NCBI GenBank assembly: GCA_002269645.1
Contig: NIVC01000051.1
Coordinates: forward strand, 558,001-622,000
Length of the DNA stretch: 64,000 nucleotides
Source of the DNA: Macrostomum lignano
Taxonomy: Eukaryota
Direction: 5' to 3'
A program made the position numbers and the translations under genes. This document shows, piece by piece, positions 1,527 through 23,900 of the stretch. The stretch's first letter is position 1. The number at the start of each line of letters is the position of its first letter. The notes below the pieces were generated by a model that worked only from the letters and a program-made list of their open reading frames with translations, searched no databases and was not told the DNA's origin.

Positions 1527-4500
1527 TCAGCCCTTTGACGTTCCGCCGCCGCCGCCGTTACGCCGATATGATAGCTCGCGCCTCACGGCTGCGGCAATGG
1601 AAGCGCAGACTTCGTTCGGCTTCTCATGGTAGAAACTGATCAAACGCTTCAATAAGAAGCTGGACTCCACAGCCTGCTTGCTGGTGTCGACTTTGGCAAG
1701 ATTGTTGATCCGAGATCGTCTTAGTTTGAGATCGTCAAGGTTCAGCAGCTGACGGCACTCTGCTGGATTTCCAGGCGACAGCAACACTAACAAACTGAGG
1801 TCCAGTAGAATCAGGTGATGCTGCTGAGATTGAGAACCGCTTCCATCCTGATGCTTCAGCATGGAGCGCTTTGGTTTGCCAATCATAGCTTTGAAGTTGA
1901 TTGCTGGCTCGTGCAGTAGGTCAAATAGTAGCAACTTGCGGGTCGGAACTTTACTGCCGCATTCGCAGACCTATATTGTTAGTCAAAATCTTTTTTTAAT
2001 ATCTGAAAGGTGTGTGTCTTAAAAGAAAGACTTAGCTACCCATAGCTAACTAGACCAAGACCTCTGACTGTTACGTCAAAGTGTCGGTTCAATTCCATAT
2101 CAGGCCAGCCCAAATCATTTAAAAAGGAGGATCAATCCCAAAGCACAGAACGTGTAGATTCCTGACATGATAAAGTCTCCGTGTGTAAATGCGTACCTGT
2201 GTGTGTATCTGTATGGGTGTGCGTTTACAATGGCCCAGGATATGGAATGGCGCTTCCTTATTTAGATTTCAATACACATCACAGGGCCTTGACATGTGAC
2301 TAGAGACGACCTAACTAATTGACTAAAAAATCTCACGCTGAGCTTCGAGCGATCGAGACTCCACGTCGAGGAAGGCAGGGACTCGTTCAGCTGCGCGAAC
2401 GCTCCGCAGAGGCCGTCGACAATTTCGCAGGCGCTAACGTCCGTCAAATGATCTGGGCCACCGAGCACGTCGCTAGCGGTCTGCCTAGCGGAGCGTGCAG
2501 CGCGCACAGCTGAGCTTTGTCGTTGAAAGTCAGAAGCCGCGTCACGGCCAAGTTGCCGCGGCTGACATCGCCGGTCAGCAACAGGTGGTTCAGTAGGCCG
2601 CCAAGACCACTGCGCCAGCGAGCGATTGCGGCTTCGTCAACGTCAGAACCGCCGTCAGCGCCAGCAACGTCGCCGCAGTCCCACAGACAGGTGACGGTGG
2701 CAACTACGGGCTGGTCCTGTTCGGCCAAACCTGCGTACAGCCCGTCAACCCGGTACCGCCGACCCAGCCGACTTTCGCCGAGTCCTTCGCCGTCCGCAGC
2801 CAGACGCAGCGGGCCGAACTTTGCAACGCTCGACAGTGCCTCGGCTGCAGCTGCGCAGAGCTGAGCGTCCTGCCAGAGACGGACAGCATCGGGTGAGGAC
2901 TTGGCCAAAAGTTTCTGTAACTGTCGGCTATGCTGGAGTCGGTCGTTGACTAGACTGAGAACGGCTGTCTCTGCAGCCTCAAGTCGGCTGGTGAGATCCT
3001 TCAGTATCTGTTTTGAGCTGCCGGCCATGTCGATTGACATGAGAGTCTCCTCAGCGGTGAGCGTCTTCCAGTCCTGCGAAATGTATTTTTTAAAGATTTC
3101 GTCTCTTGAGCTCACAGATCACAGGTACAGATTGCGCTAGTTACCTTTCCAATGCTCAGCTGCAGGCAGGAGTCTGCGCCCGGGTTAGCAGCCTGCCATC
3201 GCACCGGCGTAGAATCCCAATCGTCTCGAGCTAGGTGAAGCTGCAAAACTCGCTGCACTCGTTCACTGGACAGGCCGCAGAGCATTGCAGGTAAGTCGCC
3301 AGGCAAAAGTCTCTCGGCTAGACGACTCTCGTACGACGAAGCGAGCTCACTGGCTGCTCGTTTGAGGATGGCCGCGCAGGTGCTGATAGCACAGGCTTCG
3401 ATTTGAGCTCTGCAAACTGTGTCTCGCTGATGGAGAGTCGCGTCGTGAATCGGATTGCTGAGTGTCTGGAATTTTGAGGGCGTATAAGGAATTGATGGGG
3501 ATGCGTCAACTGAAGCACGAAGCCTACAGCTAAGCTTCAGACCACACCGACTGCAATCAATTAACTTCTCGGCAGAGTTGACGATAGAAACCCTTGGGAG
3601 CGGACCTAGTACCTTGATAGAATGTCCGCAACGTTTCAATGTCTGACAAGTTACCGTTAGGAGTTTTACTCAAGGCTAAATTTCCAGGCGGCTGATTTTA
3701 CTTCAGTTTCGTCAACATCGGTCTTATAGAAAACCTACCTGATTCAGCCGTTTGTGCAGCTGTTGGTTCTGCTGCTGCTGCTGATGATGATGATGATGAT
3801 CGTCTAGTCGTACCCTGCCGCAATCGTCCAGAACCAGGGGCCGAATCGTAGCCAATTCAGCTGACAATTGGCGCTGCAGGTCAGTCCTCTCCGAGTCCAA
3901 TCGTGCTTTGGCATCTGTGAATTCGTCAGCAATGCGGGTCTTTAGTCGGTCGGCATTGGTGGCCAGCAGCTCCAACGACTCGGTGTTTTTCGACTGCACC
4001 TGAATGAGGGGATGACGGATTTTGCAAGTAATTTAAAAAATCATTTCCCGGTATGCGTATGAAGTCTTACGAGGAAAACTACCATGGTACGCTCGTAGTG
4101 AGAAATTTATCGAAGAACCAGTCCTTGTCCCTCCTAGCTTTTTTTCTAGCAATGCTGCATACTCTAGGAAGTTCAAAAAATATTGCTAATCATTTCCACA
4201 AGCTTGAAGTTTTATTACGTGTATATTTTACACTGTCAAAAATCAAAACGGCTGTTACTTTTATAAGCTCTATACTGTTGAAATTTTATATCGTCGTAAA
4301 CTTTCGGAGCCTATGGCGAATTTCTGTAGATAATCAACCACTGTACTGTGTTTACTCACCAAGCAGTCTAGCAAGCGCAGAGAAACCGACTGCAATCGCT
4401 GCAGGCTCTGATCCGACTCAAATCTATTAGCGTCGGCTAATAGTTCGACAACGGCCTCGTCCAGTCTCGTGTCCCGGCTAGAATCGCTAGCGACGGTCTC

Positions 4501-7332
4501 GTCGTAGCTGCCACCGCTGATCGGGTCGACGCCATCGGTGGCAGCGCCGCCGTCTCCGTTGAAGAAGCCGCTGCCAACAACGCAGGACAGCGGGAGGACA
4601 AGTCGGCGAATTTGCTGGCTATCTAAGCGCTTGTCCAGTAGAAGCTGGGTCTCGCTGACAATCGAACTGCTGCTGCCAGTGTCCTCATCGAAGTCGTCCG
4701 AGGTTGAGAAGCGCGACAGACGGTACCGAGCTCGTCGAAGCCTCGGCGCCGGCGATGCGGCACCCGACGGTTGAGGTCTGGGCAGCGGTTGCGGTGACTC
4801 CGTACCAGGCTCTGTGCTGATGGAATCGACGGTCGGTTTGCAGTGGACGGCCAGAACGGGTACGTTTGGCAAGTTCACTTGCAGAGACAGCAGGTGATGC
4901 AGCTCCTGTGATAAGGGGATTTTTATTTTGGAATTCTTTCGCTGAAATCGATTGTAATAATAATAATAATAAATTAATTACACTTATCCTGATGGGCAGA
5001 TGTGCAACTGACAGCTCAGCCGCAGCTATTGTGCGGCGCATCCGAAGGCTGTTCAGTCCAAGGACTGGGGGTCGCCACACACACCCCCAATTATCCCAGC
5101 TAATGCTGGCACCCATTTTACAGCTGAGTGAACTGAAGCAATACAGAGTTAAGTGTCTTGCTCAAGGACATAAATTTTTCTGAGTGGGATCAGGAATCGA
5201 ACCTCCGACCTTCAAGTCGTGAGTCCGACGCTTTAACCACTAGGCTGCAACCCCCTAGATGGAAATATTATATGTAAACATGGATACCTAGACGACATGA
5301 TATTTTCCAGCTATCATTATATACTTTTATAAATCGATTATTGGTAGCTAGTGGTGTCTTAGAATACTTAGAAACATCACAAAGACCTCGCGAGCTTGAA
5401 AGCTTTGAAATCAGTCTTTATGCAAATTTATGCGAGAGCTTAACTACAGCAATAAAAAACTTAAATATTAAAGTGTTTCTAACACTAACACTTTAACAGT
5501 CGCCGCGTGACACATTTTATGAAAGCAATACTATGCTGCTCTGTATCAGTAATTAACAAGACATGGTGAACTTTAGGTCCCAGAACAGCGAAACAGCCTG
5601 CACTCACATTAACAGTCGGAGGCTCCTCAGTCACGCAGAGAACCGCTACCGGTTCGGCCGACTTCAACAGTTTGTAGCGACCCAGCCGGACGAGCTGCTC
5701 CGGAGGCGCTAGCAGAGTCAGGCCCGATCGCAGCACGGGATTGTCGATCTGGACGCTGAGCCAGTCGGAGGTCAGGCTGGTCCAAGCGGTGGCCGTGTCT
5801 TCGGGAAGTGAGTCGACAAATCGATCGACTTGTTCGGCAACGTCGACCTCGTCGCTATCATCGGGCCCAGCCGCCGCTCTCAACGGCAAGTAGTAGGGCC
5901 GGTCTCGCCTGTTCAGGTCGAGGCGCTGACTCTCGGAGTGGCGCAGTTTGATTGCGCCAAGACGCCTGCTGCTGCCGTCCTCGTCGGTTGGCGGCAGCGT
6001 CCGCTGTCTTAGCAGCCGATTGATGACGCCGAACTGCAGGCGACGGGAGCAGCCAGTGACTGCGAGTACGGGCGGGGCTCCACCTGCCGACTGAAAGAAA
6101 TGACAAAGCAATAAAGAGCAGACTCGTTGTTGGATAAAAATGCTCACCAAAGCCTCCCAGACCTAAGAAAAAATGATCCACTAAGGAACACTCGTGCTCG
6201 AATCACTTACTGTTTTAACAGAGTTTCAAACAAATGCAATGTTTTGGCACATGCATTATGTCAGTGTCTTGATATAATAATAATAATTAATAATAATGAA
6301 CCGACAGCTCAGCCGCAGCTATTGCGAAGGCTGCGTACGGCTGTTCAGTCCAAGGACGGGGGATCGCCACACACCCTCAATTACCCCAGCTAATGCTGGC
6401 ATCCATTGTACAGCTGGGTGAACTGAAGCAATGCAGAGTTAATTGTCTTGCTCAAGGACACAAATTGTTCCAGTGGGTCGGGAATCGAACCCCCGAGCTT
6501 CAAGTCGTGAGTCCGACGCTCTAACCTCTTGGCTACAACCCCCTTATCACATATTAAATTAAAACATAGATATAAAGCTTTTCCAGGACATTATTTTGTA
6601 ATATTTAATATTATGTATAATATTACGCTAAAACGAGGAGAAACTCTAGGCATAAACCTCGGATTTCGTCTTGAAATTATGACAATCATTTCCGGTTGCT
6701 AGCTCAATATTTTTTACTTGGTATAAAATGGTAGCAATGCCTCACATCCCTTCCGAGGGCCTGTACCCAAGAGAGGGCCGTCAGCACCATAGGCAGCTTC
6801 CCAGCTGCATATACAAGCGTTAGCTACATAAGCACATGTTCATTTGCACTTGTATAAAGCATAATCAAATAGTAGAGCTTGTCCACAACAGGTAGCAAAA
6901 TTTCTAACGAAAAAACCTGGTAACATGAATTGAGCAAAAGGCTCCAACGCTTACATCTGAATCAGTGAATGCTGCACTAGCCAAAGTGCTCGAGCCAGTC
7001 AGCGATCCTGTCAGTAGAGAAGCGTCGATGCCTACCGGCTTTTGCATCGTCAGCTGCTGCGGCGGCGGAGGCGGCGGCAGCGGGTTCTGATCGCCTCTGG
7101 CCACACCAGGCAACGCGTCGTCCAGATGGCAGGCCCAGGCCAAAGCTCGCTCTCTGACTGAGCGCATGCGTCTGTCGAATCGGACCCATCGGCCAAGCGG
7201 GCTTTGCCTGGCTGCAGCTGTTGAACTGGTTGCGACCGACGTTGTCGAAGTGGACGCCGATTTGGCCGCTCGCTCAGTGGAGACGCCGGTCCGTATGGCG
7301 GACAGCTCACGACGAACGAGAAGTCGCAGCTC
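1527..7332 (-). CDS. Module B: degenerate dynamin-like domain, helical region and pseudokinase (DSTYK-like layout); probably the 3' half of a gene starting at 16637
   Basis: Phase-consistent GT-AG exons at 7332-6955, 6090-5608, ~4905-4360, ~4000-3737, ~3645-3145, ~3074-2335 and ~1968-1527. Aligns by eye with module A (RLWQDAQLC, RWRSxLGGLLNHLLL, LAVTRLLTF). The P-loop position reads AVTGCSRRLQFG. One 1-bp frameshift near 2474. Confidence 0.55.
4953..5235 (-). mobile_element. tRNA-headed SINE, copy 1
   Basis: Minus strand has A-box-like TAGCCTAGTGGTTAAAG-type and B-box GGTTCGATTCC motifs, a CORE-like TGTCCTTGAGCAAGACACTTAAC segment and a (TTA)n tail. Homologous to 6275-6544 and 8031-9100. Confidence 0.7.
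6275..6544 (-). mobile_element. tRNA-headed SINE, copy 2
   Basis: Same head, core and (TTA)n tail as 4953-5235; intronic. Confidence 0.7.
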
Positions 7333-7490
7333 CTGTAAGGTCGAATTGTATGGTGGAAGCTCATCCCTAAGAATTTATCGTTCGCTCATCGCTAACACAA
7401 TCAATTTCGTAGCTCTAATGTCGGTAAAACTACTTTATATTAAAGTTTAGTCGTAAGTCAGTCGATCAAGTTAAAAAGCGTCTGCTTCAC

Positions 7491-10400
7491 CTGAATGAGA
7501 TCGTCCTGCTGAGCTCTCTGGTACAAGGCAGTGGCATTAATAGCCAGAGTACGCCCACTAGCAGCGGCTAGGGCTTTGAGACGTTCTCTTCGTTCCGTAA
7601 TTGCTCGCGTTGAAGGCGAGGCTGTTATATTGGCAGTTAACAGACTCTGCAACTCTTCCGGCGTCGCCACCTCCTGAGCAGTCCGATTAGTACTAATTGC
7701 TAGCGAGTCTGTCGATTTCAATAGCAGCGCCACGGCCCAGTCCAGTAGCTGATGGTGACTGCCGTTTCTTATCAACAGAGTCGCCGTCGACGTGGTGGAT
7801 GATGGTGGCAGCGTACCGCCAAAATCGATGGGGTCGTCTAGAAGGCTGTAGACTACGGACACTCGATTGCCTGGCAGCACTGACACCTGAGAATGTGGAG
7901 AGAAGGACACAGATTAAACCTAATCTACATGTGCTTCGATTGTACAAGACAACTTTAACCAGTCTGTAAATGGTACCATTGTACATTCCTGTGTTCTTCG
8001 GTGTACATTGCATTCTCGTCTAGGGGTTGTAGGGGTTGTAGCCTTGTGGTTAAGGGCACCGAACTCACGACTAAAAGGTCGGGGTTTGATTCTGGACCCA
8101 CTCGGAACAATTTGTGTCCTTGAGCAAGACACACTTAACTCTGCAGTTCACCCAGCTGTAAAAATGGGTGCCAGCTAGGGAATACAAAATCCCGAGTTTT
8201 GCCAATCCCGGGATTCTCGGGATCGGGATATCCCGGACTTGGCCAATCCCGGATCCCGACGAATTGGGACGGGATCCCGGGATGCCGGGATTGAAAAATT
8301 TTATAATTTTTGTTGGTCCAATTTTGGTTTACGTAGCCATCTAACCAAGGGATTTCAATCATAAAAGTGGAACAGAATAAAATATTTTGCAAACAAGAAA
8401 CTGACCGTGAGCTCTGAATTGGAGTTATGATGCACGGACTGGCGTAATAGACATGCTTTTTACATGCCAGTATCAGCTCAGGAAAATCACACTTAAATAT
8501 GATGTCACCTGGGAATGATAGCTTACAGAGCTATGGCCCGAGGAGCTGATACCAGGGTAGAATGGGATCAGACCTCACCCTCGCAGGGGCACTTGCCCTA
8601 GATGGAGAATTGGTAGCTTGGGTTGTGGTCTGATAGCAAGGTCCCACTGTTCTAATCCCAACTACATACGGCCAAGAAGTTTTGAAGGTAGGGAGGGACT
8701 GCTTAAAGTAGTCCTACATTATTACCCCTTAAATACCCTCACAACCTGCTAACAGCTTCAGTTTTGTATCCCTATAGCCCTAGCCTTCTATTCACATGCT
8801 TTAATGATAAAGAAATCAAAGTAGGACAACTGGGTTATGATTTTCATCTGACAAATATCTCAGCTGCAAATACTACTATTCGAGAATAAATGATTGAATT
8901 ATTGCGAAACGGTATCGGGATCCCAATGGTCGATCCCGGGATTTTCGAATCCCGGACAAGTGTGATCCCGGGATTTAGGCCTAATTAGCACTGCCAGAAT
9001 TAGCTGGGGTAATTGAAGGTGTGTGGCGACCCCCAGTCCGTACGCGTACGCAGCCTTCAGATGCGCCACGCGATAGCTGCGGCTGAGTTGTCAGTTGCAT
9101 ATTAGGGCATGTGTAGTCAGTCATTCTTACTGTTAGTCGTATTTCGAATTGGGCTTCTTCACAAGCTTCTCAGAACATTGCAAACTTGAAGCGTCGATGT
9201 TCGAATTTTACAATAAAAAGTGTCAGTTGTACATTAAGATACGGTAATGTAAATAAAGTTTTTTGGTACTTCGGACCGCTGTATTACATGTATTGATTAT
9301 GACGAAAAATAAACCCAACACTGACAAGCTACATCAGCTCACCTTCAGCTTGTAAAAGTCAAAACGACACGCAAACGCCGGGAGAGAGTCCGATAGCTGG
9401 GCCAGTGCGCCGCACATGCCGTCGATGAGTTCGCAGGTCTGGGCGGTTCCGATTTGATTGAAGTTTTATGAGGCTGTTTAAACATGTTTTTCAATGCCTT
9501 TGCTTTTTACACACGCAAATAACTGTAAAGATGCTTTAAAAAACCCAGAAACTCTGAAATTTGGTCTGTGTTAACAAAGACGGGATCACGAGAAGTTCAC
9601 CCGACAGGCAATTTTATAGTTGTTGGTAAACAAGCAGCTTGTTTCAGCCTAATCAGCTGGCATCGGTCACACAGCCCCTTGTACATGTAGACTGCGCCTG
9701 TGTTGCTGTAACTGGCACTCTACTAAGGGCAGACGGGCAAGTTGCAGACCCAAGTTCTCGTAGACCCGCAAAGACGACTACTTTAGTTTGTATAATATAG
9801 TCTGCAGTGCAAATTAACTTATTACAACTCAATCACACTCTGATACTCAAAGTCTTAGCGCACCTGAACATCCGTGAGTCTTGTCGAGTTAGACAACAGC
9901 CGTGAGATGGGCACCCCGATAGGCAGGTGCAGAGCGCACAGTTGCCCCGTCTCGCTGAACGTCAACAGTCTGGTCACCGCCAGGTGTCTACCGCGATGCT
10001 GACTGGCCGACGAACCTGCCGACGCTGTCGCCGCCGCGGCTGCTCCACTTCGAGTCGAACTCACCAACAGCAGGTGGTTGAGCAGACCACCGAGGCTGGA
10101 GCGCCAGCGGGACAGAGTAGCCTCGTCCTCGTCGCTTTTTGCTCCGTTGGACTGGTCGTTAAAGTCCCACAGGCTGGTGACGGTAGCAATCAGTTCGTGA
10201 GCAGAGAAGCCAGCGTACGGTGCAGCTAACCTGTAGCTCGGACCCAAACCAGCTTGTATTGGGGCTTCGGCTGAAACGGGTGACACGACATAGGTAAGCT
10301 ACGATGCTTGCTATAACGGATTTAAGCATGGAGTCTAACGATTCTCTGGAAAGTGAAGGGTTAATAACTTCACAGTGGCTGTACGTATCAACTGAAGCAA

Positions 10401-13400
10401 GAGAATAGCCCCAGAGACAAGTTGAAAGGAGAAAAAGATTAAAATAAGCCAACCATTCGCACCCTCGGAATTTAGCAGCTCCAAGTCGGTCTCCAGGCGT
10501 AGAGGTCCGTGTCTGGCAACGTTTACCAGACCGTCTGCCGCTGCCACGCAGAGCTGAGCGTCCTGCCACAGACGGAGAGCCTCCGGTGCGGATCTGAAGA
10601 TTAATACTCAAATTTTCTAGCAGAGACGATATTGTTATCCTATTTTTCTGGCCTAACTGTCAGTTTGAAAATTTTCCGATTGTTCCTTCATCCTAAACCC
10701 TAACGCCAACCCAATTTTACAACTAACCAAGTCAGTCCCCGGTGAAAACGGTACCTAAGCCAAGAAGCATCCCAGAGTCACTTGCGTTGCCCCAGAGTCG
10801 CTGCAGGTAACAGGGGTAAAATAGGAAATAAGTAACTCTAGACGACTCTAAAACGACGAGATGTCACAGTAAAAGTCGCCAAAAAGTCGTCAAAAAGTTG
10901 CCTAAGAGTCAATTTGAGACGCTTTATTGCGTGCTACTCTGAAAGGCACTGGGACGCTTCTGTAATGACTCTGAGGCCGTAGAATCGTATCTGAGGCGTG
11001 CTAGAGTCGCTGTAGAATCACTGAGTTGCACTGCTAGAAGGAGAAGGCTTAAGTGAAACCACAGTTCGGCGCAGGGATCCCATTGTTTGATACGAGGCCT
11101 CTGATTGGTCCTGACTGCAGATACCGGTCGGAAGTAACTTCATCGGAAGTACAAGAGGAACCAGGACCAGAGCAACTGAAGAACCAAGGCTCCTGATCTA
11201 CCAGATCAACTGAGAGAACTACTGACGCAGGAGACTACAGACGAGATCTCACCTGAATCAAGGTAAGCAGTAACCTTCATTGATAACTGGGTTGCCTTGC
11301 TAAGAGCTAGAAGTGATTGTTCTTTGATTACCGAGAAAGGTCTCAGTAATAAGGAACACATCATTGCGTCTAAAGCGTAGCTGCGTCACGTGATGAATTA
11401 GAATCGCACTTTGCATTTATAACAACTCCATTTAGTCTACTTGAGTTAGAAGAAAGTTAAGCGCTGACACAACGACTCTTGGACGAATTTTTCGCGATTT
11501 TTTACAGTTACATAATTCACGTTGCTTTTGCATTGAATTACAGTCGTTTAAGTTGTTAAAAGGTTACAAGATTCGCTAGAGTCAATAGTGATTGGTTTGC
11601 AATGGTTCTTTAGCGATTCTTGTCACGGTAACGTTTTCAACGGGGTCAAATTGCTAGAAAAGTAAAACTTCCTTTATTCATTCGATTAACTGTACTTGTA
11701 TCACCTGCCCATTTGCTGCTTACCTGGCCAGCAGTTTCTGCAGGCCGCTGTTGTGCTGCAGCCGGCTGGTCACAATGCCCATTATCGTGGCCTCCGTCTG
11801 GCGCAGTCGATCTTCAGCCTCGTGAAACAGTCTCTGGGTCATCCAGTTGACTTCAATAGAATCGTAGCTGGTCTCGGCCAGCGACCGGATCAGTTCTCGG
11901 CCAGTCAGCGCGGCTTCCTTGCCGCCGGCCGGCCGGGCAAGTTTGTCCGCTGCGCCGCGAAAGAATCGAACAACGCTGAGCAGGCGAGTCGGCCGCCGTC
12001 GAATCTGTACGTTCAGGGTGAGCTGGGCCAACTGGCTGATGCCGTGAGAAGCCTTGTCGGCTACCGATTGTCCGAGCATCTGAGCTGTTTGCTGGCAATA
12101 GCTCAGGCTGCAGATCCGGGCTTGAAGTTCGCTAAGCTTCTCCAGCAGGGTTTGACGAATGTCCTGAATTGTGTTGTATTTTGGTTTGAAACATTGAATC
12201 TGAAACTCCCACTGAGGAGACGCCGATGGAATAAATAGATGTTTTTCGAAATTCGAGAAGTCGTACATGCTTTGAGAGTGCATGCCATCGCTCTTTGTTT
12301 GAATCTTAGTTCAAACTGACTTAAAATTTTATTGTAAGAATATTATTGAAGTCATCAACTTCATCGGTGTTTTCACTTTCTCAAGGGCATCGCTACCTCC
12401 AGGGAAAATCCATAGGAAGAATGTTCATTCTGCCTCTCCGGTGTTGAGAATGCGGAGCACTACTTCATCTGTGAATGCCCCGTCTTCACTTCTTCACTTA
12501 AGACACAGGCTCACCCACCTCGACCCAAACCCGGATCTCTCCGAAGTTTTTAGGTCCGATAATATCTGCCAGCTCGCCCGCTACCTGAGGGCTACCGGGC
12601 GAACTCTCACTTCCTGAACTCTCCTGGATGGGGACCGCGCTGCGGACACCAGCACCACTGGATTGATCTCCCTGCGCGACACACACCGAAACAGGAGCTG
12701 CCCATGCTTGCCAGGGGTTAACGGAATAGGCGGCAACGCCTCCCTCGCTGTATCCGGATGCTCGGAACCCCCCGCAGCTGAGTCAAGTCACTTTCCCAAG
12801 CCCAGGTACTCCTAGATCATGAACTCAGTCACCTGCTTCCGAATATTAATATAGAATGCCGAATTAGCGAAATGTTGACAGTTATAGCCTCAGAACATTA
12901 TAAGTACTCGTAACTGAATCACGATATACTTCCATGGCTGGCAATACCATTTTGATGTTAGTTTAACCTTGCACTACTTACGTTGCTTTCATAGTATAGC
13001 GCTAAAAGCGACTATTCTTGACTTGCATGTATTTTGTGAGAGGGCTGCTTCACCATTCGTGGAAATTCCGCGCTCACCTGCAGCGGCGCTCGCAGCAATT
13101 CCTCGAAGCGACTCTGCAGTCTACGCACCACCAGGTCCTGCACCAGTTGAGTGATGCGTTCCTTCTTTGCAGCTTCGTCTGTTGAGCCGTCCTCAGACAT
13201 TGGCTGGTCGACGCACCAATCAATAATATCTTGCTTCTCCCGTCGGTAGACTTGATCAACGGTGAACACGAAACTGCGTCTTTTGTCTTTCATGTACTGC
13301 CAAACTTCTCGGAAAATTTTCTTAGTCTCGCTGGTGAGCTGATTGAGCGCCTCCTGGTTGTTGAGCTGACCCTCCGGGTGTAGGAGTCGATGACCAGCCG

Positions 13401-16400
13401 TGAAGGAGCGATACAGACGCATGGAAGCAGTTCGCAGCATCTCAGCTGACAGGTGGAACACGCCCATCTCTCTGGCGCGCAGCATGCCATCCAGCTCGGC
13501 TTCCAGCTCTTTGTACCGCTGCTTGTACAGCTGGTTCCTTTCGGCAACCTCCGGACTGACCTCTTTCAGCGGAACGTTCCAGCGAAGCAGCGATACAAGG
13601 ACCGCGCGGTCCGGTAGTCCCTGGAATCCTTGCAGGCCCAGGGTCTTCGTCAGTATGTTCAAAGCGCGTTTGGCATTGTTCTCCTCGAGCAAGCGACCTT
13701 TTGAGAAGTTTTTACGCAGAGACTCGTCGTCATCGTCTTCGTAGAAGTTCTCGGACTCGTCGGAGTCATCGTCGTCGGAGTCGGAGCCGGGCTCAGCTTC
13801 GTCGCGTTTCAACGCCTCCGGATTGAAGTCGATCTTGTTGATCACGTACAGGATGTTCAGATTGGTGCACTGATTCTTCAGGCGGAGGAGGAACTCGCGA
13901 ACCTGGAGGACGATTTAAAATTTGGGGAAATGGGTAAGCTTACGCCGGATGTTAAATATGCTCAAACAATGCAAGCTTCACGTATTTCCGTGCGCCATCT
14001 TTTTTCGAAATAAATATCATGAACACAGAATCTGAACTTTCCCATTTCCGTTGGACTTTTTCCTAGTCGAATCTTATTCTTTTGAGACTTGACTGTATGA
14101 GAATACCGACTTAAAGGAGCAGAGCAGCTCAGTCAAACGCGTCTGACTCTCGGTGTACACCGCGATGCACAGCCATGAGGGCCTAACCCCACAGCACAGA
14201 GAGTGTACATGTCAGACGATTAGAAAGCCGTGTCTGTTTTACACACTGTGTAAGGATATTTTGTAAGGATATCACATCCTAGTTATTGTTTATATCATAC
14301 AGCATCGTTTAAAGGATCGTTATTTTTTGCAAGCGTCACCAGTCAAAATACAATGATGATTGCATCTTCAATAAAAAATCTAACAAGGTCAGTGCTTTGC
14401 ATACAAATTCAATAATTCAGACTAAATCACGGAATAAAGTGACGAGACTCTTTACTCTTCACAGTTTGTTTAGCCACGGTTGTGTTACTGATCGCTACCG
14501 TAATGTGTTTGACATGGATAGACCAAGAGATCCAGGGTGCGGTCTCCCCCCATCACCGAACTCCGACTTTGCGTACCATCTGAGAAATGCCGTTCATTCC
14601 ATCCAGCATGAACACCAGAGTCTGGTAGAGCGATTGCTCCTGCTGATTGAGAATAGACAGCAGGAAGTCCTCTCGCAGGCATTCCGGCACCTCCATGATT
14701 GAAAAGCCGCTCTGCAACAGCGGGCAGTCAACGCCGATCTCGAGCCAGCAGTTCTCCTTCAGCGACGACCATTCCTGTCGTTCCTCTTCGTTCATGCGGT
14801 CGTGTATGAAGCCTCGGACAAGATTGGCCAGCTCTGGACAGCCTCTCGCGTTGTTGTTGCTCCCGTTGTCGCTGCTCGAGTCCGAGTTCAAATTGAGTCC
14901 CCGGTAGCTGACGTAAAACCTGCGTGAAGTGTCACGTGGTTACGAATCTGACTAGAAGAGCAGACTCTTGATATTAATTAGGAACTCAACTCTACATGCT
15001 TAATTACTTTGCGATCATCTTTTGTAATCATTTGTCTTTGAGATCAGTCAAAGTTTTCACAGTACTATTAACGAAAAATAGTTCACCTCTGAGAGTAGAC
15101 AATCCTGATGACGCCCTTGTCCTCCTGGCCGAAACGGACTGGCAAAACTCGTCGGCCCATTAGGCTGTTAATTAGAGTCGACTTGCCGCTCGTTGGAGCG
15201 CCGCAGACCATCAGCACCTGAGGAGTGGGGGTGTCAGATGAGCTAAAACATTTCGAGATTGGGGATTGCGAGTTGCCAGAGGTACCAGGCGCCAGCACCA
15301 GAGGCGCCAGCACCAGAGGCGCCAGCACCAGAGGCGCCAGCACCAGAGGCGCCAGCACCAGAGGCGCCAGCACCAGAGGCGCCAGCACCAGAGGCGCCAG
15401 CACCAGAGGCGCCAGCACCAGAGGCGCCAGCACCAGAGGCGCCAGCACCAGAGGCGCCAGCACCAGAGGCGCCAGCACCAGAGGCGCCAGCACCAGAGGC
15501 GCCAGCACCAGAGGCGCCAGCACCAGAGGCGCCAGCACCAGATGCGCCAGCACCAGAGGCGCCAGCACCAGAGGCGCCAGCACCAGAGGCGCCAGCACCA
15601 GAGGCGCCAGCACCAGAGGCGCCAGCACCAGAGGCGCCAGCACCAGAGGCGCCAGCACCAGAGGCGCCAGCACCAGAGGCGCCAGCACCAGAGGCGCCAG
15701 CACCAGAGGCGCCAGCACCAGAGGCGCCAGCACCAGAGGCGCCAGCACCAGAGGCACCAGCACCAGAAGCGCCAGCAGGCTAGAGGCTAGTTGATGTGCT
15801 GACGAAATGTAGCAAATAAAAAAGCCAACCTGCCAACCCACCGGTTTCGCGTGGCAGCCAAAGCTTGCCGTGATTCCCGCACTCTCCGGTTTCGTTATCC
15901 AGCCGTTGAAGCTCGCCGCCGCCCCGCTGGACGCCGCCGCCGAAGCGGCATCTCTGCCGCCACTGCCGCCGCTGGAGGCCGGACCGCCCACCAGGCGCTG
16001 CACACCGTCAGCGGTGCTCTGCAGCCGGCGATACGCCCGCATGGTCAGCAGGCGCCAGTTGTGCGCCTCGAATCGGTGCCGATCGAACTGGCGCAGATGG
16101 GGCGAGCAGCTGATTGGCCGCATCCGCTGCAGCCTGTCGCCAAGGCTCGAGCAGCTGCTGCCGCAGTCGAATTCATCTGCGAATTGTGGCGTTCGAAGTT
16201 TTTAATTAACAGTGAAAAGTTAGTTAATCTCCATAAACGCTAACTGACGAGCTTAGAAACGGATTGCTTATCTATCCTTGTTTAAGTCAGGAAGTACATT
16301 GAATAGATAGACAAAGGGATTGGTAATCTATCTAACGGTGATTCAGGAAATAGTACAGATGGATTGCTAATCTATCCAACTGTGATTCAGGGAATAGTAC

Positions 16401-16637
16401 AGATGGATTGCTAGAAATCTAGGAAGTCTAATACTTGAAGACAAATTGCCTGCTTTTACGTGTATCCTAAGTCATTTACATATACTGTAACAACTCACCG
16501 TCATCTGAGTGCTCGGAGCCCTGCTCAAAGTCGCAATACGCCGGCTGATCCCTGTGCATGGTCTGCATCGGTCGGGACTCGAACCCTTCGTTAAGCTGAC
16601 TGCGTCGATAGGAAACTTCCGCATCCTGTTGCATCAT
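7491..16637 (-). CDS. Module A: dynamin/mitofusin-like P-loop domain, helical region and pseudokinase (DSTYK-like layout)
   Basis: Exons 16637-16499, 16176-~15841, ~15243-15087, ~14923-14575, ~13903-13078, ~12292-11724, ~10593-10464, ~10295-9862, ~9440-9343 and ~7886-7491, mostly phase-checked. G1 VCGAPTSGKSTLINSLMG and G4 INKID are present. The C-terminal kinase-like segment lacks HRD and DFG. Confidence 0.6.
8031..9100 (+). mobile_element. tRNA-headed SINE, copy 3, split by an ~0.8-kb insertion
   Basis: The head and core at 8031-8175 continue as ATTAGCTGGGGTAATTG at ~8999, matching the reverse complement of SINE copies 1 and 2. Confidence 0.65.
8176..8983. mobile_element. Putative MITE-like insertion inside the SINE
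   Basis: Interrupts the SINE. Begins TAGGG, ends CCTA, and both ends are dense in ATCCCG/CGGGAT subterminal motifs. The TSD is not clean. Confidence 0.4.
12380..12850 (+). mobile_element. 5'-truncated non-LTR retrotransposon 3' end (zinc knuckle plus UTR), intronic
   Basis: Frameshifted HRYLQG...FCLSGVENAEHYFICECP...RHRLTHLDPNPDLSEVFRSDNICQLARYLRATGR* resembles the CCHC C-terminus of LINE ORF2. Confidence 0.55.
15286..15777. repeat. 15-bp minisatellite (GAGGCGCCAGCACCA), ~33 copies, intronic
   Basis: Near-perfect array lying between the donor at ~15840 and the acceptor at ~15244. Confidence 0.95.
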
Positions 16638-17346
16638 GTGTTGTCGCGCAGTTTTGCAGTATTTATTAACAGTACTTTATTGGTGCTTAGTGAAGTTTCA
16701 ACTGCATGGCAAACTTCATTGTGGTCGACTAAGCTATGTAAAGCTGTCTATCTGCGGCTGTTATAAGCAATGAGAGTTCACATGTTAGCCATGTTAAGCA
16801 GCCATATACGCGGTATCAAAGTTAACTATCAGGTTTAAAACGCAGAGTGGCAAGGGTTGGCATTATGGGCATCAAACTGATGAAGATTGTTTATTTTGCT
16901 AAATAGCTAACTACGAGCGTGTAAACTTATACGAAATGGTTCGATTTCAAAGGTTAGAAATCTGTATCTCTGCACCCCGTGCGGCACTGTGCATCCCTAT
17001 CCCAGAGTACATTAAAGCTACATGTATGTGCGTGTCTGTGCGTGTCTGTACATGCAAATTCAACTACATGCTATAGCATTCAAGCTAGCATTTTCATTGG
17101 TATAATTTAAGCCGCACAGATTTGTATACAACTAATGCGGCTGCCTGCCTGCTGCACAAGTCTGAAATATACTGAGAAACTGTCAAAATTTACCCATGCT
17201 ATAGCTTCCATCTTCAAAACTGACTAATGTAAAATGTGAGAGAAGGCACGGTTTAGACAATAAGCGACAGTAGATCATTTAGAATGGGGATTAATTACGA
17301 GCTAATCCGAAAAGGAAAGGATAAATGTAGTAGAGCTTTACAGCAC

Positions 17347-17730
17347 ATTTGTGTCAAACATTGACAGCGCATTTGTGTCAAACATTGACAGGGCATTTGT
17401 GTCAAACATTGACAGCGCATTTGTGTCAAATATTGACAGCGTATTTCTGTCAAATATTGACAGCGCATTCGTGACAAACATTGCAAGAATGTGTCAAACA
17501 TTGACAGCACATTTGTGTCAAACATTGACAACGCATTTATGTCAAACATTGACAGCACATTTGTGTCAAGCATTGACAACGCATTTATGTCAAACATTGA
17601 CAGCACATTTGTGTCAAGCATTGACAACGCATTTATGTCAAACATTGACAGCAAATATGTCAAACATTGACAGCAAATATTTCAAACATTGACAGCAAAT
17701 ATGTTAAACATTGACAGCATATTTGTGTCA
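17347..17730. repeat. 24-bp minisatellite (TGTGTCAAACATTGACAGCACATT)
   Basis: Tandem units, reflected as 8-aa periodicity in the overlapping spurious ORFs. Confidence 0.9.
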
Positions 17731-19428
17731 AAGACTGATTTCAAAAATTTAATTAAAATAAAATTCAATAACAACAACGACTCTGTTATTTTTTGAGCAC
17801 ATGATAACAAATTCAGCTATGAGTACATGAATACGACGTCCTTTTATAGCAGGTAGATTCAACTACCTGTTAACTTATATTTTTGTGCGTGTAATCATTG
17901 GTTTCCTATCCATGGCATAACGAGCTGCTGTCCATAGTAGTGGCTTTGACACATGCGATATGAGACATGGGGCCAACTTAAAGAGGAAAATGCACAACAT
18001 ATCGAGTGATTCTGTTATGACAGCAATATTGACTGGGTTAGCTGGGACAGCAAGCGTGTGGCAACTAAATATATAGCATAATAGGCCCTGCTTATTTGAT
18101 TTCAATTTCGCTTATATGTAGTAGTACTAATAGTACTAAAATACCAATCCAATTGTAATGCTATATTTATACAGAATTGATTTTGGCAATAAATTGACAA
18201 GCTGTAGGTTGCAACAGTGTATAGTTGAACATATTAAGTAATAGAATAGACAGAGACACAGTTGTTAGACAGATACACACCTTGGGCCGAAGATTCAAAT
18301 TTAATTAAACAATATTGCAGATTGGATAGTCGCATGAATTTTTTCTCGTATTGCTAACAATAATAGACACTTATATTAGGCAAATCCCATGCAAATGTAG
18401 GCCAAAGGAGATTGATATTATATGACAGCCTAAGAACCCAGGTGAATGAACAAGGAATTGAACCACTGACTAACAATAAGACATACAGGTAGAACGTTTA
18501 GAAAAAAACTTTTTTGACTTATAAAACACTAACGCCAAAAGCAGTTTAGAAGAAAAATGGAAACCCAAGTTTTACCAAGAATTTGCGTATGCACCCTACT
18601 GTAAGTAGAATTGTGAGAAATCAACTTGAATAGCGTAGGAACAAAGCATAGGAGCGATCCGAAATAACCAAAAATCACGTTAAGAAAACAGCAGAAATTT
18701 GATAAGCAATCAAAAAGGCATGTATGTATCTCTGCGCGAGGTTCTACTTATAACAGTACACACATAGCAACATAGAGCTCAATTCTTACCGCAGATACTA
18801 CTTAACAACTAGATAAGATCGCAAGCAATATGTGCGTATTATTCAACTGTACTACTTTCTAATAAGTAGCGTGATCTCTCACTCTCTTGATTTCCGACCC
18901 GAGGCTACACACCCTTTCTGTCGCCACTTTTCTGCCCCTATTTTTATCAGTTTATCAGTTCTAGGGGCTAAGCAATGTACATTGCCAGCTGACGAGTGGG
19001 TGATAAAACCACTCCCCACCTAATTTTATTTTACTAGGTCTGGAATGTACATATCTACATTATTTCCTTCGATAAACAAGTGTACATTTCCTTCGCCCCT
19101 GGTAGCCTGATATCGACCCAAATATTTTCTCTAACCTTCTCTACCGTCCATTCTATTGCGCCAGTTTGACAGTCCTGGGGTTGACTATCTGCCCAGCCAA
19201 ATAAATGTACATTTCTATTGCCCTGAGTTTAACGTCTTTAAATATCTAACAATTATATCATAGAAAAATACTAATTAAAAACTTGCTACTGAATAGTGAG
19301 TAGTAACAGTTGTTTTCTCGCAAAGGGAATTAGCGTTCCAATCAATCTAGTCATTATAACTTAGTATCTGGTGCCTCTCACCAAACCGGACAAGAAGTGA
19401 TTACGACAATTAAATTTACTTAGAGTTA

Positions 19429-20925: not shown

Positions 20926-23900
20926 CTAGCCAAAGAAGAACTCAAAGTGGCCGCCATTGCCCTGCTGGTGGTGCTCAAACGGATCGAAATGATGAAAGGT
21001 GAAGCCGCCGCCGCCAAACGAATTGAAGCCCTCGTGCTGCTGCTCTGGGTCCAAGGGATCTTGGCCGTTGTCAAACTTTGCTCGCTTCTCTGAACATGGC
21101 GGGTGGATGATTGGGTAGGGGAGGCAGTGAGCGGAGAGAGAGTTCGACAATGAGGAGAGCTCAACTTCTATTGACTGAACTATGAGGAATTTAGAGATTA
21201 ACTAAAAATTTGATTGAAAATATTAACAAGTGAAACTTTTGTGAATTACTCTACTGACTAAGTAGTTTAATTGTAAATATTACCGTTTCCAAGAATTTTT
21301 TTAATTTGATGGTAAACATTCCATATAATCTTTGCATTGTCAGTAATTTTACAGAAATTTTAATTTAGACAACTTTATATAAACTATACTTATTTCAGAA
21401 GTTCAAGGAATATTTAGCAGCATTTTGAATTGTTATAAACATATATGGTAAACTCACTAATTATATTTTTAACGCATTTCAGATGGTCAGTGATGATGCA
21501 AAAGTGAAACTGAGAATTATACGAGACGAATTTCAAGCCGGGATCAAGAAGTACAAAATCTACAAATTAGATAGCTTAGATGTACGTAACATAACACCTC
21601 AATGCCTAGAAGAAGCGATCCAGAATTCCAAGCAACTACTAAAAAAGCACAACATAAAAATAAATAAATTCAATTCTTATTATAGACAAACTAAATATGC
21701 AGCTGCGATATGCTTTTTTAAACCTTTTACCAAAATAGCGACGTAATATTATAGATCGATCGCACAACAAAACCTTGCATACATGAAAAAACTAAGAAAT
21801 TGTAAGTTGAAAGATATTTGGATTTAATTTATGTTGTCATTGTCACTACAATTTGAGCAAGCATAATTGGTATAGCAAGTAGGGAAATGCAAACGCAAGT
21901 CACGTCAATTAATAACATCATCTACTAAAACTTGGCAGATACAAAGTTGCATTTCTCAGTTGAGTTTCATGAAATATATGAATTTATCTTAGCTAACTGC
22001 ACTCTGCATACTGTGTTTATCATCAATTAGTTAAAGGTTGAAAAAATTGTTGAAAGAGTACGAGATTTACGATTTTACAATAACTTTATAAAAATATAAT
22101 TACGGCTAATGCGGATTGCTTTGAATAAGACAACATTGTCAATTTGAATTCAGACAACATTTTCGCTTTGGGTATAGATAAAATTGTCAATTCGAGTTAT
22201 ATAACATTGTAAATATCAGTTTGAAAACATTGTCACCTTGAGCTAAACAACATTTTAACCTTGAGCTGAAGTGACAACATTGTCACTTTGAGTTAGATAG
22301 CATTGTCACTCTGAGTTAGATAGCATTGTCACTTTGAGTTAGACAACATTGTCACTTTGAGTTAGATAGCATTGTCACTCTGAGTTAGATAGCATTGTCA
22401 CTTTGAGTTAGACAACATTGTCACTTTGAGTTAGATAGCATTGTCACTTTGAGTTAGACAACATTGTCACTTTGAGTTAGACAACATTGTCACTCTGAGT
22501 TAGACAACATTGTCACTTTGAGTTAGACAACATTGTCACTTTGAGTTAGACAACATTGTCACTCTGAGTTAGACAACATTGTCACTTTGAGTTAGACAAC
22601 ATTGTCACTTTGAGTTAGACAACATTGTCACTCTGAGTTAGACAACATTGTCACTCCGAGTTAGATAGCATTGTCACTCTGAGTTAGACAACATTGTCCA
22701 CTCCGAGTTAGATAGCATTGTCACTCTGAGTTAGACAACATTGTCCACTCCGAGTTAGACAACATTGTCCACTCCGAGTTAGATAGCATTGTCACTCTGA
22801 GTTAGACAAAACTGTCACCTTGAGTTAGTTGACATTGCCACATTAACAAATGACTCATGCAATTTTATTTTAACAAAAAATCACGACAATGAACACAATT
22901 CAAAACCATATAATAGTAGGATAAAACTGACATTTATATAACAAAAGCTACTCACCCTCATCGGTGAGCACCTCCTTGGCGTCTGAGATGTCAATAAACT
23001 TCCTCTGGGCACTTGCTTTATCGTTGCCCTTGTAGTGATCTGGGTGGTACTGAGCAGCCAGCTTCCGATATGCCTTGAGTATCTCTCGTTTCCTAGCCGA
23101 TCTGGGCACGCCAAGAATCTGATAATAATTTCGTCTGCGCGACGATTTCAACTTTTTCTGCGCATCAGCAATGCCCTCCTTGGCGCGCTGATTGTTCTTG
23201 TCAGTCTCTAGCACCTTCTGGTAGTCGGCAATGGCCTCGTTGAACATGTCCTGATGCTTGTAGGCCTCGGCGCGATTGCACAGAGCATCGGCGTTGCCGG
23301 GCTCCGCTTCCAGGACTCGAGAGCAGACGTCCACAGCTGCCGAGTCGCCATTCTTTGCGCCGCACATGCACTGGTAGGAGTCCATCTGGCGAGTTAAGCC
23401 TGCCGATTTTTGCTTGATAGTTTTTGTCAATTTTTCCAACAACTGCAGGCAGATGTCCCATTGTTTTTCTTCTGATGATTTCACTACGGCATCGAACGCT
23501 TTGGCTACCTTTTTGACCTGTTTATAGTGCTTGAAGCAGTCTTTGTGATCGGGGTCGAGTTTGAGGCATTCGCGAACTTCGTTCAGAGATTGCTCGGGAT
23601 CGCCCAGGCGATAGAACAGGTGGCTGACCCGCAGGTGACCGGCGGTGTTGTCAGTGGTTAAGCGGTTGATTGCTCGCAGATCTGAGGCCGCCTGTGTCAT
23701 TGTTATTTATCAATGTATTGTTAAAAGTGTTGTTATCCGCAACCCAATTCCGTACTTTAAAGATGCCGCAATATCCTACGTACTTTAAAGATGCTGCAAA
23801 CTCCTGTGTACTTTAAAGATGCCGCAACCCTCTTCCGTACTTTTAAAGACGCCGCAACCCTCTTCCGTACTTTAAAGACGCCGCAACCCCCTTCCGTACT

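Follow-up and report, generated by a model that had tools for sequence, protein, structure and literature searches.

We analysed a 64,000-nucleotide stretch of the Macrostomum lignano genome (assembly GCA_002269645.1, contig NIVC01000051.1, positions 558,001–622,000), hereafter the window, whose minus strand carries one gene that fuses two tandem homologous modules. The gene runs from 16637 (start) to 1527 (end) in 17 exons with a coherent GT-AG structure, the same limits that a preliminary description of this DNA had drawn. Each module joins a predicted dynamin-like N-terminal part to a C-terminal domain of ~320 residues, located at the kinase position of DSTYK, the dual serine/threonine and tyrosine protein kinase also called 'dusty' or RIPK5. 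The conceptual protein, with its reading frame restored at one site, is 2,137 amino acids long (module A, residues 1–1093; module B, residues 1094–2137), shorter than the ~2,400 residues first estimated.

The public record holds this gene as BOX15_Mlig031520g1 (PAA92483.1, here P0002), a 1,953-residue 'hypothetical protein' that maps with 100% identity to 16637–2444 (minus strand) in 16 exons, with GT-AG introns throughout. The UniRef name of its cluster is 'Dynamin N-terminal domain-containing protein'. The features of the gene are listed below, where "mapping" denotes the spliced mapping of PAA92483.1, G1 to G4 are the GTPase motifs, and the other P numbers designate further protein models.

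16499–16637, minus strand: exon 1, residues 1–46, start codon ATG at 16637 (exact mapping; donor GTGAGT).
15842–16176, minus strand: exon 2, residues 47–158, ahead of the module A G domain (mapping; junction also in P0001 and P0003).
15287–15777, no strand: noncoding tandem repeat of 15 bp × 32.7 inside intron 2 (Tandem Repeats Finder; three protein models splice over it).
15087–15217, minus strand: exon 3, residues 159–201, with G1 GAPTSGKS (15202–15179) and a degenerate G2, PVRFGQEDKGV (15142–15110) (mapping; Pfam Dynamin_N, E = 7e-7).
14577–14919, minus strand: exon 4, residues 202–316, with a degenerate G3, IMEVPEC (14699–14679; DxPG in the family) (mapping, alignment).
13078–13902, minus strand: exon 5, residues 317–591, with G4 NKID (13839–13828), an acidic linker and the first long stalk helices (mapping; AlphaFold2, Foldseek matches to BDLP/mitofusin).
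11724–12163, minus strand: exon 6, residues 592–737, stalk and pre-kinase-position helix (…RLQHNSGLQKLLAR) (mapping; hhalign of the middle region, E = 3.7e-10).
10463–10593, minus strand: exon 7, residues 738–781, conserved block APEALRLWQDAQLC…GPLRL (mapping, comparison of modules A and B).
9864–10270, minus strand: exon 8, residues 782–917, beginning of the module A kinase-position domain, with a putative β3, LIATVTSLW (10193–10167), that has no Lys (mapping, alignment).
9343–9438, minus strand: exon 9, residues 918–949, putative αE/catalytic-loop remnant …CRFDFYKLK (9363–9343) (mapping; register inferred, not significant).
7491–7886, minus strand: exon 10, residues 950–1081, remainder of the module A kinase-position domain, with a literal DFG (7826–7818) (mapping).
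7333–7490, minus strand: intron 10, 158 nt, phase 0, GTGAAG…CCTTACAG (mapping).
6955–7332, minus strand: exon 11, residues 1082–1207, module A end (ELRLLVRRELSA) followed by the start of module B, rich in Ser/Thr/Pro (mapping, comparison of modules A and B).
5608–6090, minus strand: exon 12, residues 1208–1368, module B G-like domain, with GCSRRLQF (6054–6031) at the P-loop position and LLAPPEQ (5715–5695) at the G3 position (mapping; hhalign, E = 9e-6).
4360–4905, minus strand: exon 13, residues 1369–1550, with VHCKPTVD (4848–4825) at the G4 position, then linker and stalk (mapping, alignment).
3739–3999, minus strand: exon 14, residues 1551–1637, module B stalk with a His/Gln run (mapping).
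3145–3465, minus strand: exon 15, residues 1638–1744, module B stalk (mapping).
2334–3073, minus strand: exon 16, module B pre-kinase-position helix and first half of the kinase-position domain, donor AGC/GTGAGA at 2334/2333 (mapping, homology).
1527–1970, minus strand: exon 17, end of module B (…AAAVRRELSYRRNGGGGGTSKG) and stop codon TGA (1529–1527), outside the deposited coding sequence (acceptor ATATAG/GTC; join found in P0005, P0041 and P0042).

The two modules are joined across intron 10. Its donor, CAG/GTGAAG, ends exon 10 at 7491 and opens the intron at 7490; its acceptor, CCTTACAG/GAG, closes the intron at 7333 and starts exon 11 at 7332. This 158-bp, phase-0 junction had been predicted from the DNA and coincides with the exon 10/exon 11 junction of PAA92483.1. 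Reading into the intron instead yields ten codons (VKQTLFNLID) followed by a TGA stop (7460–7458). The exon downstream begins with ELRLLVRRELS, and its VRRELS (7317–7300) recurs at 1586–1569, near the final stop codon of module B, as expected if this exon start is the true end of module A. Exon 11 thus spans the boundary between the modules: in a single open frame, the final 12 residues of module A lead directly into the start of module B, from which we infer that the stop codon of the first copy was lost. The annotation of this assembly (Mlig_3_7) is built from a StringTie/TACO assembly of RNA-seq reads (Wudarski et al. 2017, PMC5730564), and transcription units in it are cut at experimentally mapped spliced-leader (SL) trans-splice and poly(A) sites (PMC5730564). 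That pipeline left a model spanning both modules uncut, which is therefore indirect transcript evidence for one gene and, likewise indirectly, for a locus that is transcribed and spliced. The older model P0003 skips 17 residues (VPECLREDFLLSILNQQ) relative to P0001 and P0002 in the exon 4 region of module A (~14690–14640), including the degenerate G3; the skip reflects either alternative splicing or an artefact of gene prediction.

The 3′ end of the gene extends beyond the deposited model. In exon 16 the window reads …CCG CTA GCG AC GTG…, one base short at 2471/2470 (minus strand) of other M. lignano protein models. This missing base switches the frame, and the resulting 1-nt frameshift, which the preliminary description did not mention, ends the deposited coding sequence early, at the TGA at 2446–2444. 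Similarity to module A resumes in the next frame (2474–2334) and continues in the exon at 1970–1527, so that 194 codons downstream of the frameshift are still open and the coding segments 2468–2334 and 1970–1527 are absent from the deposited annotation. Three partial M. lignano models from another annotation (P0005, P0041, P0042) read continuously across the site (RPLADVLGG…) and confirm the exon 16/17 join, SKLS/VCECGSK. Two of the three, P0005 and P0041, reach the same C-terminal end with few residue differences; P0042 agrees only up to HHLILLD, ~98 residues short of the protein end, and then diverges. A short intron that would rescue the frame was rejected, as the sole GT…AG pair at the site spans 16 nt. 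The assembly was produced from PacBio reads with Canu and polished with Pilon, and the frameshift is either a residual assembly error or a very recent lesion of this copy.

Modules A and B, which the preliminary description had read as two homologous modules in tandem, align over their whole length. BLASTP pairs their C-terminal halves at 32.6% identity over 553 residues (E = 2e-63) and their G regions at 28% identity over 176 residues (E = 9e-8). The C-terminal domains are 42–43% identical between A and B and 21% identical to that of the single-module M. lignano paralogue P0004; by these comparisons, the nearest relative of either module is the other one. Three phase-0 intron positions are common to both modules (A316/317 and B1368/1369; A591/592 and B1637/1638; A949/950 and SKLS/VCEC in B), and these coinciding positions indicate that the duplicated genomic segment already had introns. 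Mis-assembly as the origin of the tandem modules is ruled out by an identity of only ~33% between them. Three blocks, LQKLLA+S.P.A, LGGLLNHLL and LAVTRLLTF…QLCALH, are retained in A, B and P0004.

Homologues of module A point to the DSTYK family. Module A, scanned with HMMER against 1.84 billion representatives, matched 32 proteins, four of them from M. lignano: P0001, which is the gene's own N-terminal fragment; P0005, the partial model of module B; P0004 (BOX15_Mlig003289g1-3, 1,076 residues), matched at E = 1.6e-49 over module A residues 16–829; and P0006 (746 residues). The remaining matches are mostly animal proteins of ~850–1,190 residues, with a few shorter ones. Sixteen matches were looked up and come from cnidarians, hemichordates, nemerteans, a brachiopod, M. 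lignano and two unnamed metagenome/Logan entries; NCBI or UniRef names nine of the 16 'dual serine/threonine and tyrosine protein kinase(-like)', and sampled metazoan matches without such a name are left uncharacterized by NCBI. Proteins named DSTYK or DSTYK-like match through homology to the module A G domain, with HMMER E values from 5e-13 down to 1e-4. Sampled relatives carry Pfam Dynamin_N at the N terminus and, in most of those scanned, Pkinase or PK_Tyr_Ser-Thr at the C terminus. The double layout, whose orthologues the preliminary description had suggested seeking, was found in none of the 31 other HMMER matches, all shorter than 1,200 residues. Word-indexed homologue searches with single pieces of the gene returned M. 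lignano itself or nothing, and a profile version of the search was dominated by bacterial dynamin-family proteins and generic kinases, with no DSTYK orthologues. The automatic UniRef fragment names 'PI3K/PI4K domain-containing' and 'GED domain-containing' were not reproduced by Pfam and were not used.

In profile–profile comparison with hhalign against 22 DSTYK-like proteins, the Macrostomum proteins reach a probability of 100% (E = 7e-42, 731 columns). The G domain matches the DSTYK-like profile at E = 8e-32, and the helical middle at E = 3.7e-10 (query 31–338 on template 310–646, the template kinase starting at ~646). Module B by itself matches in the G region (E = 9e-6) and the pre-kinase helix (E = 1.3e-3). 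A canonical DSTYK, P0029, is present in M. lignano as well, with Pkinase (1e-39), Dynamin_N (2e-19), HRD and DFG. Judged by these matches, the gene is a lineage-specific, tandem-duplicated DSTYK paralogue, part of a Macrostomum-specific branch that exists beside an intact DSTYK.

DSTYK, its DSTYK-like relatives and the Macrostomum gene share one order of parts: the Dynamin_N G domain comes first, the helical middle follows, and a further domain occupies the kinase position at the C terminus. In contrast to DSTYK, the Macrostomum gene has two modules per polypeptide, lacks G2 and G3 in module A and every G motif in module B, and carries a kinase-position domain that is unrecognisable by sequence. 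The closest full-length relative of module A is P0004, which has the degenerate G3 (E-I-P in P0004), the conserved pre-kinase-position helix and the LGG..NH and TFNDK..LC.LH blocks in common with it; P0004 differs in its single module, in keeping the G of DxxG, and in its diverged C-terminal domain. The preliminary description had treated the dynamin-like-plus-kinase layout of DSTYK as established. Domain hits to Dynamin_N and Pkinase bear this layout out, but no paper describing the DSTYK N terminus as dynamin-like was found in the literature searched, where neither DSTYK in combination with dynamin, GTPase or AlphaFold nor the gene identifier led to anything relevant.

Loss of kinase motifs recurs in the relatives, a further likeness to the Macrostomum gene: 20 of the 22 closest DSTYK-like proteins lack the combination of HRD and DFG, and only two keep both. 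Among these related proteins (P0007–P0034), the sources identified include hemichordates, nemerteans, Nematostella and Lingula, with several such paralogues in hemichordates and nemerteans. Degenerate 'pseudo-DSTYK' copies thus seem widespread among the sequences compared.

The N-terminal part of each module is predicted to be dynamin-like, of BDLP/mitofusin type, with the fold support coming from module A. Pfam detects Dynamin_N in module A at 29.8 bits (cut-off 27), whereas the G region of module B is recognised only through its homology to A (E = 9e-8) and through a DSTYK-like G profile (E = 9e-6). Built on a 25-sequence alignment, the AlphaFold2 model of module A gives its G domain and long helical hairpins a predicted local distance difference test score (pLDDT) of ~65–88. 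Searched with Foldseek against the PDB, this model (the only one of the two modules so used for the dynamin-like part) matches BDLP (2j69, E = 5.6e-12) as well as SynDLP, IniA, Drp1, mitofusin-1/2, Fzo1 and the C. jejuni dynamin-like protein (DLP) pair (5owv, 5oxf). The dynamin-like N termini first proposed for this gene are thus supported by Pfam, by Foldseek and by hhalign to the DSTYK-like G domain.

The branch comprising BDLP, mitofusin and Fzo1 provides the best structural matches to the predicted G domain and helical bundles of module A. Unlike those proteins, the Macrostomum protein lacks a paddle, and a search of it for transmembrane or strongly hydrophobic segments found none; its catalytic switch residues are gone, and it carries a large additional domain at its C terminus. 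In bacteria, too, two dynamin-like modules act together, in two-headed DynA as one fused chain (PMC12998192); the likeness is an analogy of independent origin, and the bacterial proteins, in contrast to the Macrostomum gene, have no domain at the kinase position. They also differ from it in GTPase activity.

The G motifs of module A were read from an alignment with 24 relatives and compare with module B as follows.

G1: GxxNCGKSS in the DSTYK-like family; GAPTSGKS in module A (kept); GCSRRLQF in module B (lost).
G2: PCTSR in the family; EDKGV in module A (lost); Ser at the Thr position in module B (SSRR; lost).
G3: DxPG in the family; EVPE in module A (lost); APPE in module B (lost).
G4: NKxD in the family; NKID in module A (kept); CKPTVD in module B (lost).

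A complete G1–G4 set (GxxxxGK[ST], Thr, DxxG, [NT]KxD) is therefore absent: module A keeps G1 and G4 only and module B keeps none, which agrees with the earlier readings that module A retains G1 (15202–15179) and G4 (13839–13828) without the G2 Thr and DxxG, and that the module B P-loop is gone (6054–6031). The G3 replacement, E-[VI]-P, is non-ancestral and common to module A, P0004 and P0006, indicating that the catalytic death of the G domain is older than the internal duplication and has been conserved since.

The C-terminal domains are harder to assign. Pfam finds no kinase in them at E values up to 10, phmmer and profile searches against the PDB return nothing significant for a kinase, a hidden Markov model (HMM) of the DSTYK kinase gives negative scores against the Macrostomum C termini, and hhalign of the domain to the DSTYK-like profile yields E = 0.26–0.59, which is not significant. 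Conversely, a Macrostomum HMM searched against DSTYK-like proteins produces weak, consistent matches to the pre-kinase helix only. AlphaFold2 models the last 320 residues of module A poorly (pLDDT 28–50) and the C-terminal 308 residues of module B with a mean pLDDT of 51.6. In the latter model, the first ~120 residues (pLDDT 65–77) follow the order β-β-β-αC-β-β-αD-αE, as in a kinase N-lobe with αD and αE; the remainder, corresponding to the C-lobe, is not resolved, and the best-modelled strands fall in alignment columns filled only by the three Macrostomum sequences. All of the top 50 Foldseek matches to this model are kinase domains (FGFR4, B-Raf, DYRK1A, CDKs and the ROR1 pseudokinase among them), at weak E values (best 0.086, range 0.09–0.4) and template modelling (TM) scores of ~0.15–0.2. 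The terminal helices resemble the αH/αI pattern of the family. HRD is absent from both C-terminal domains, and no Lys stands in the putative β3 under the favoured register. The preliminary description had stated that neither kinase-like part has HRD or DFG; the first half of that statement stands, but module A has a literal DFG at residues 970–972 (7826–7818), in a column where P0004 has TFG and module B has NFK.

We regard a relic of the DSTYK kinase as the more likely reading of the C-terminal domains, by a modest margin. What favours a relic is their collinearity with DSTYK-like proteins, their length, the αH/αI-like tail and the erosion of kinase motifs in relatives. The word 'pseudokinase', proposed earlier for these domains, accordingly reflects where they sit in the DSTYK layout, together with a fold signal that is weak: of the dynamin-plus-pseudokinase module as first described, the dynamin-like part holds, while the kinase part lacks a significant sequence match and is assigned by position only. 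Fold comparison, which had been suggested as a check, divides in the same way (dynamin at E = 5.6e-12, kinases only at E ≥ 0.086).

The best explanation of the locus overall is a fused double DSTYK-type gene with degenerate catalytic centres, to which we assign a probability of about 0.6. Several points weigh against it. A kinase origin has no statistical support from Pfam, the PDB profile search, hmmsearch or hhalign; two MAFFT runs place the C-terminal domain in different registers relative to real kinases; and the kinase Foldseek matches, besides being weak, come from a model whose AlphaFold2 alignment included true kinases, which introduces some circularity. An mRNA for module B made by trans-splicing, or an isoform that retains intron 10 and encodes module A only, is possible. 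The frameshift, if real, would remove the last ~190 residues of this copy, and Pilon polishing argues somewhat against a simple sequencing error. Finally, the nucleotide binding, pseudo-dimer packing and cellular role discussed below for this protein are predictions.

The alternative that survives best concerns only the C-terminal ~320 residues of each module, where the kinase could have been replaced by a mainly helical domain, specific to Macrostomum and with a small β-sheet; this is compatible with the rest of the fused double-gene explanation. The failure of every sequence method to link the region to kinases, the low AlphaFold2 confidence, the disagreement in detail between the module A and module B models, and the unstable alignment register would all suit a novel domain. 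Against these stand the collinear DSTYK-like homology up to the kinase boundary and a length that is about right, a plausible erosion path through the 20 of 22 relatives without HRD plus DFG, an N-lobe-like order of strands and helices whose Foldseek matches are exclusively kinases, and the DFG/TFG/NFK column with the αH/αI-like tail. On balance we consider a replacement unlikely, though it deserves the most weight among the rivals.

A second alternative is pseudogene decay: in this recently polyploid genome, the gene would be a redundant DSTYK-like duplicate whose lost motifs, low-complexity inserts and frameshift reflect neutral erosion. Such decay would account for a frameshift that persists in a polished assembly, for the degeneracy of all catalytic motifs, for the Ala/Ser, His/Gln, Pro and Gly runs, and for the lack of a double layout in the other HMMER matches. 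However, there is a single disruption in ~2,137 codons and 17 exons, every splice site is GT-AG, and the frame stays open past 2471/2470, where other M. lignano protein models read through. Moreover, A, B and the older paralogues P0004 and P0006 retain strongly conserved blocks, a shared non-ancestral G3 replacement among them, despite overall identities of only 21–43%, and the RNA-based model has the locus transcribed and spliced. A pseudogene is therefore very unlikely. Slightly less probable still are two separate genes, with a module A mRNA ending near the 7460–7458 stop by intron retention, a module B mRNA SL-trans-spliced at 7333 and the giant gene an annotation artefact of a polycistronic precursor: M. 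lignano trans-splices ~39% of its genes, ~7% of its assembled transcripts are multi-gene precursors (PMC5730564), a trans-splice acceptor resembles a cis acceptor and an in-frame Met (…FDRRMRSV…) lies soon downstream of 7332, but a pipeline that cuts at mapped trans-splice sites left the model whole, the junction is open and phase-matched, and the first 12 residues of exon 11 complete the last helix of module A and match the VRRELS of module B, which would be pointless in a separate module B mRNA.

Returning to the fused double DSTYK-type gene, we propose that an intron-containing module of a diverged, Macrostomum-specific DSTYK branch was duplicated in tandem and that the copies were fused into one polypeptide when the first lost its stop codon. 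Each module comprises a G domain of BDLP/mitofusin type, a long stalk of helices and the ~320-residue C-terminal domain at the DSTYK kinase position. To judge from the motifs, module A may bind guanine nucleotide without hydrolysing it and module B may bind none; the C-terminal domains, without a β3 Lys or HRD, would transfer no phosphate. The protein could then be a soluble, non-catalytic assembly protein, although a 'scaffold' role, as the preliminary description had it, is an inference only. More speculatively, and by analogy with DynA, the two G-like heads might pair within the one chain as a pseudo-dimer, mimicking the GTP-dependent G–G dimer of dynamin-like proteins, and the protein might join a membrane- or lysosome-linked process of the canonical DSTYK, alongside intact P0029. 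In its most specific form, this picture is of a two-headed pseudo-dynamin, in which a GTP-binding, non-hydrolysing module A is locked to a nucleotide-free module B in mimicry of a G–G dimer, with the kinase-derived domains as docking platforms, and which serves as a constitutive organelle or membrane tether or as a regulator of the canonical DSTYK. We hold this version to be distinctly improbable, somewhat less so than a pseudogene.

Rfam and tRNA scans of the window found nothing. Its other features are listed here.

17340–17732; 35.2–36.1 kb; 53.6–55.5 kb; 56.2–57.2 kb; 58.0–59.5 kb: long minisatellite arrays, consistent with the reported high simple-repeat content of the M. lignano genome; the array at 54–56 kb has an extreme GC skew of 0.66.
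22951–25061, minus strand: upstream neighbour, a TPR and DnaJ gene, DNAJC3/p58IPK-like (DnaJ, E = 2e-18), in agreement with the TPR-annotated neighbour in the NCBI record.
33877–34575 and 59554–60273, both minus strand: near-identical open reading frames (ORFs), by eye the C-terminal part of a CYLD-like protein; their near-identity suggests a local segmental duplication.
~38.2–51 kb, both strands: Maverick/Polinton-like integrated element. In searches with single ORFs, separate ones match a double jelly-roll capsid-like domain and a protein-primed DNA polymerase of family B (DNA_pol_B_2, with an Endonuclease_7-like segment); integrase-like and packaging-ATPase-like ORFs were recognised by eye, and the polymerase is split over several frames.
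51860–53221, minus strand: CYLD-like exons by eye, comprising an ORF at 52637–53221 with a sub-threshold CAP-Gly match and an ORF at 51860–52558 with no Pfam match.
60600–62411, plus strand: uninterrupted PiggyBac-type transposase ORF of 604 residues (Pfam DDE_Tnp_1_7, E = 4e-69) with a C-terminal zinc finger; this copy may be active or domesticated.

DSTYK is a disease gene of poorly understood molecular mechanism, linked to urinary-tract malformations and the spastic paraplegia SPG23. Our comparisons show the DSTYK family overall as a predicted BDLP/mitofusin-like dynamin module fused to a kinase, a view not discussed in the literature searched, and they suggest that animals have repeatedly made DSTYK paralogues with dead kinase motifs. 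For the Macrostomum gene itself, the fused model was already public and Dynamin_N already appeared in its UniProt name; new are the tandem double DSTYK-type module, its motif-by-motif degeneracy, the unannotated 3′ exons with the frameshift, and the placement in a Macrostomum branch that coexists with an intact DSTYK. The general impact is modest, this being a lineage-specific hypothetical protein and not a new kind of system. Within the family, however, the gene is an extreme case, doubled and with all its catalytic centres eroded while particular non-catalytic blocks are retained. A two-headed pseudo-dynamin, if true, would expose DSTYK as a dynamin–kinase fusion with an unstudied GTPase half. 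If the protein is functional, it would reveal what matters in the DSTYK scaffold when enzymology is absent, and, M. lignano being tractable to transgenesis, that function would be amenable to experiment.

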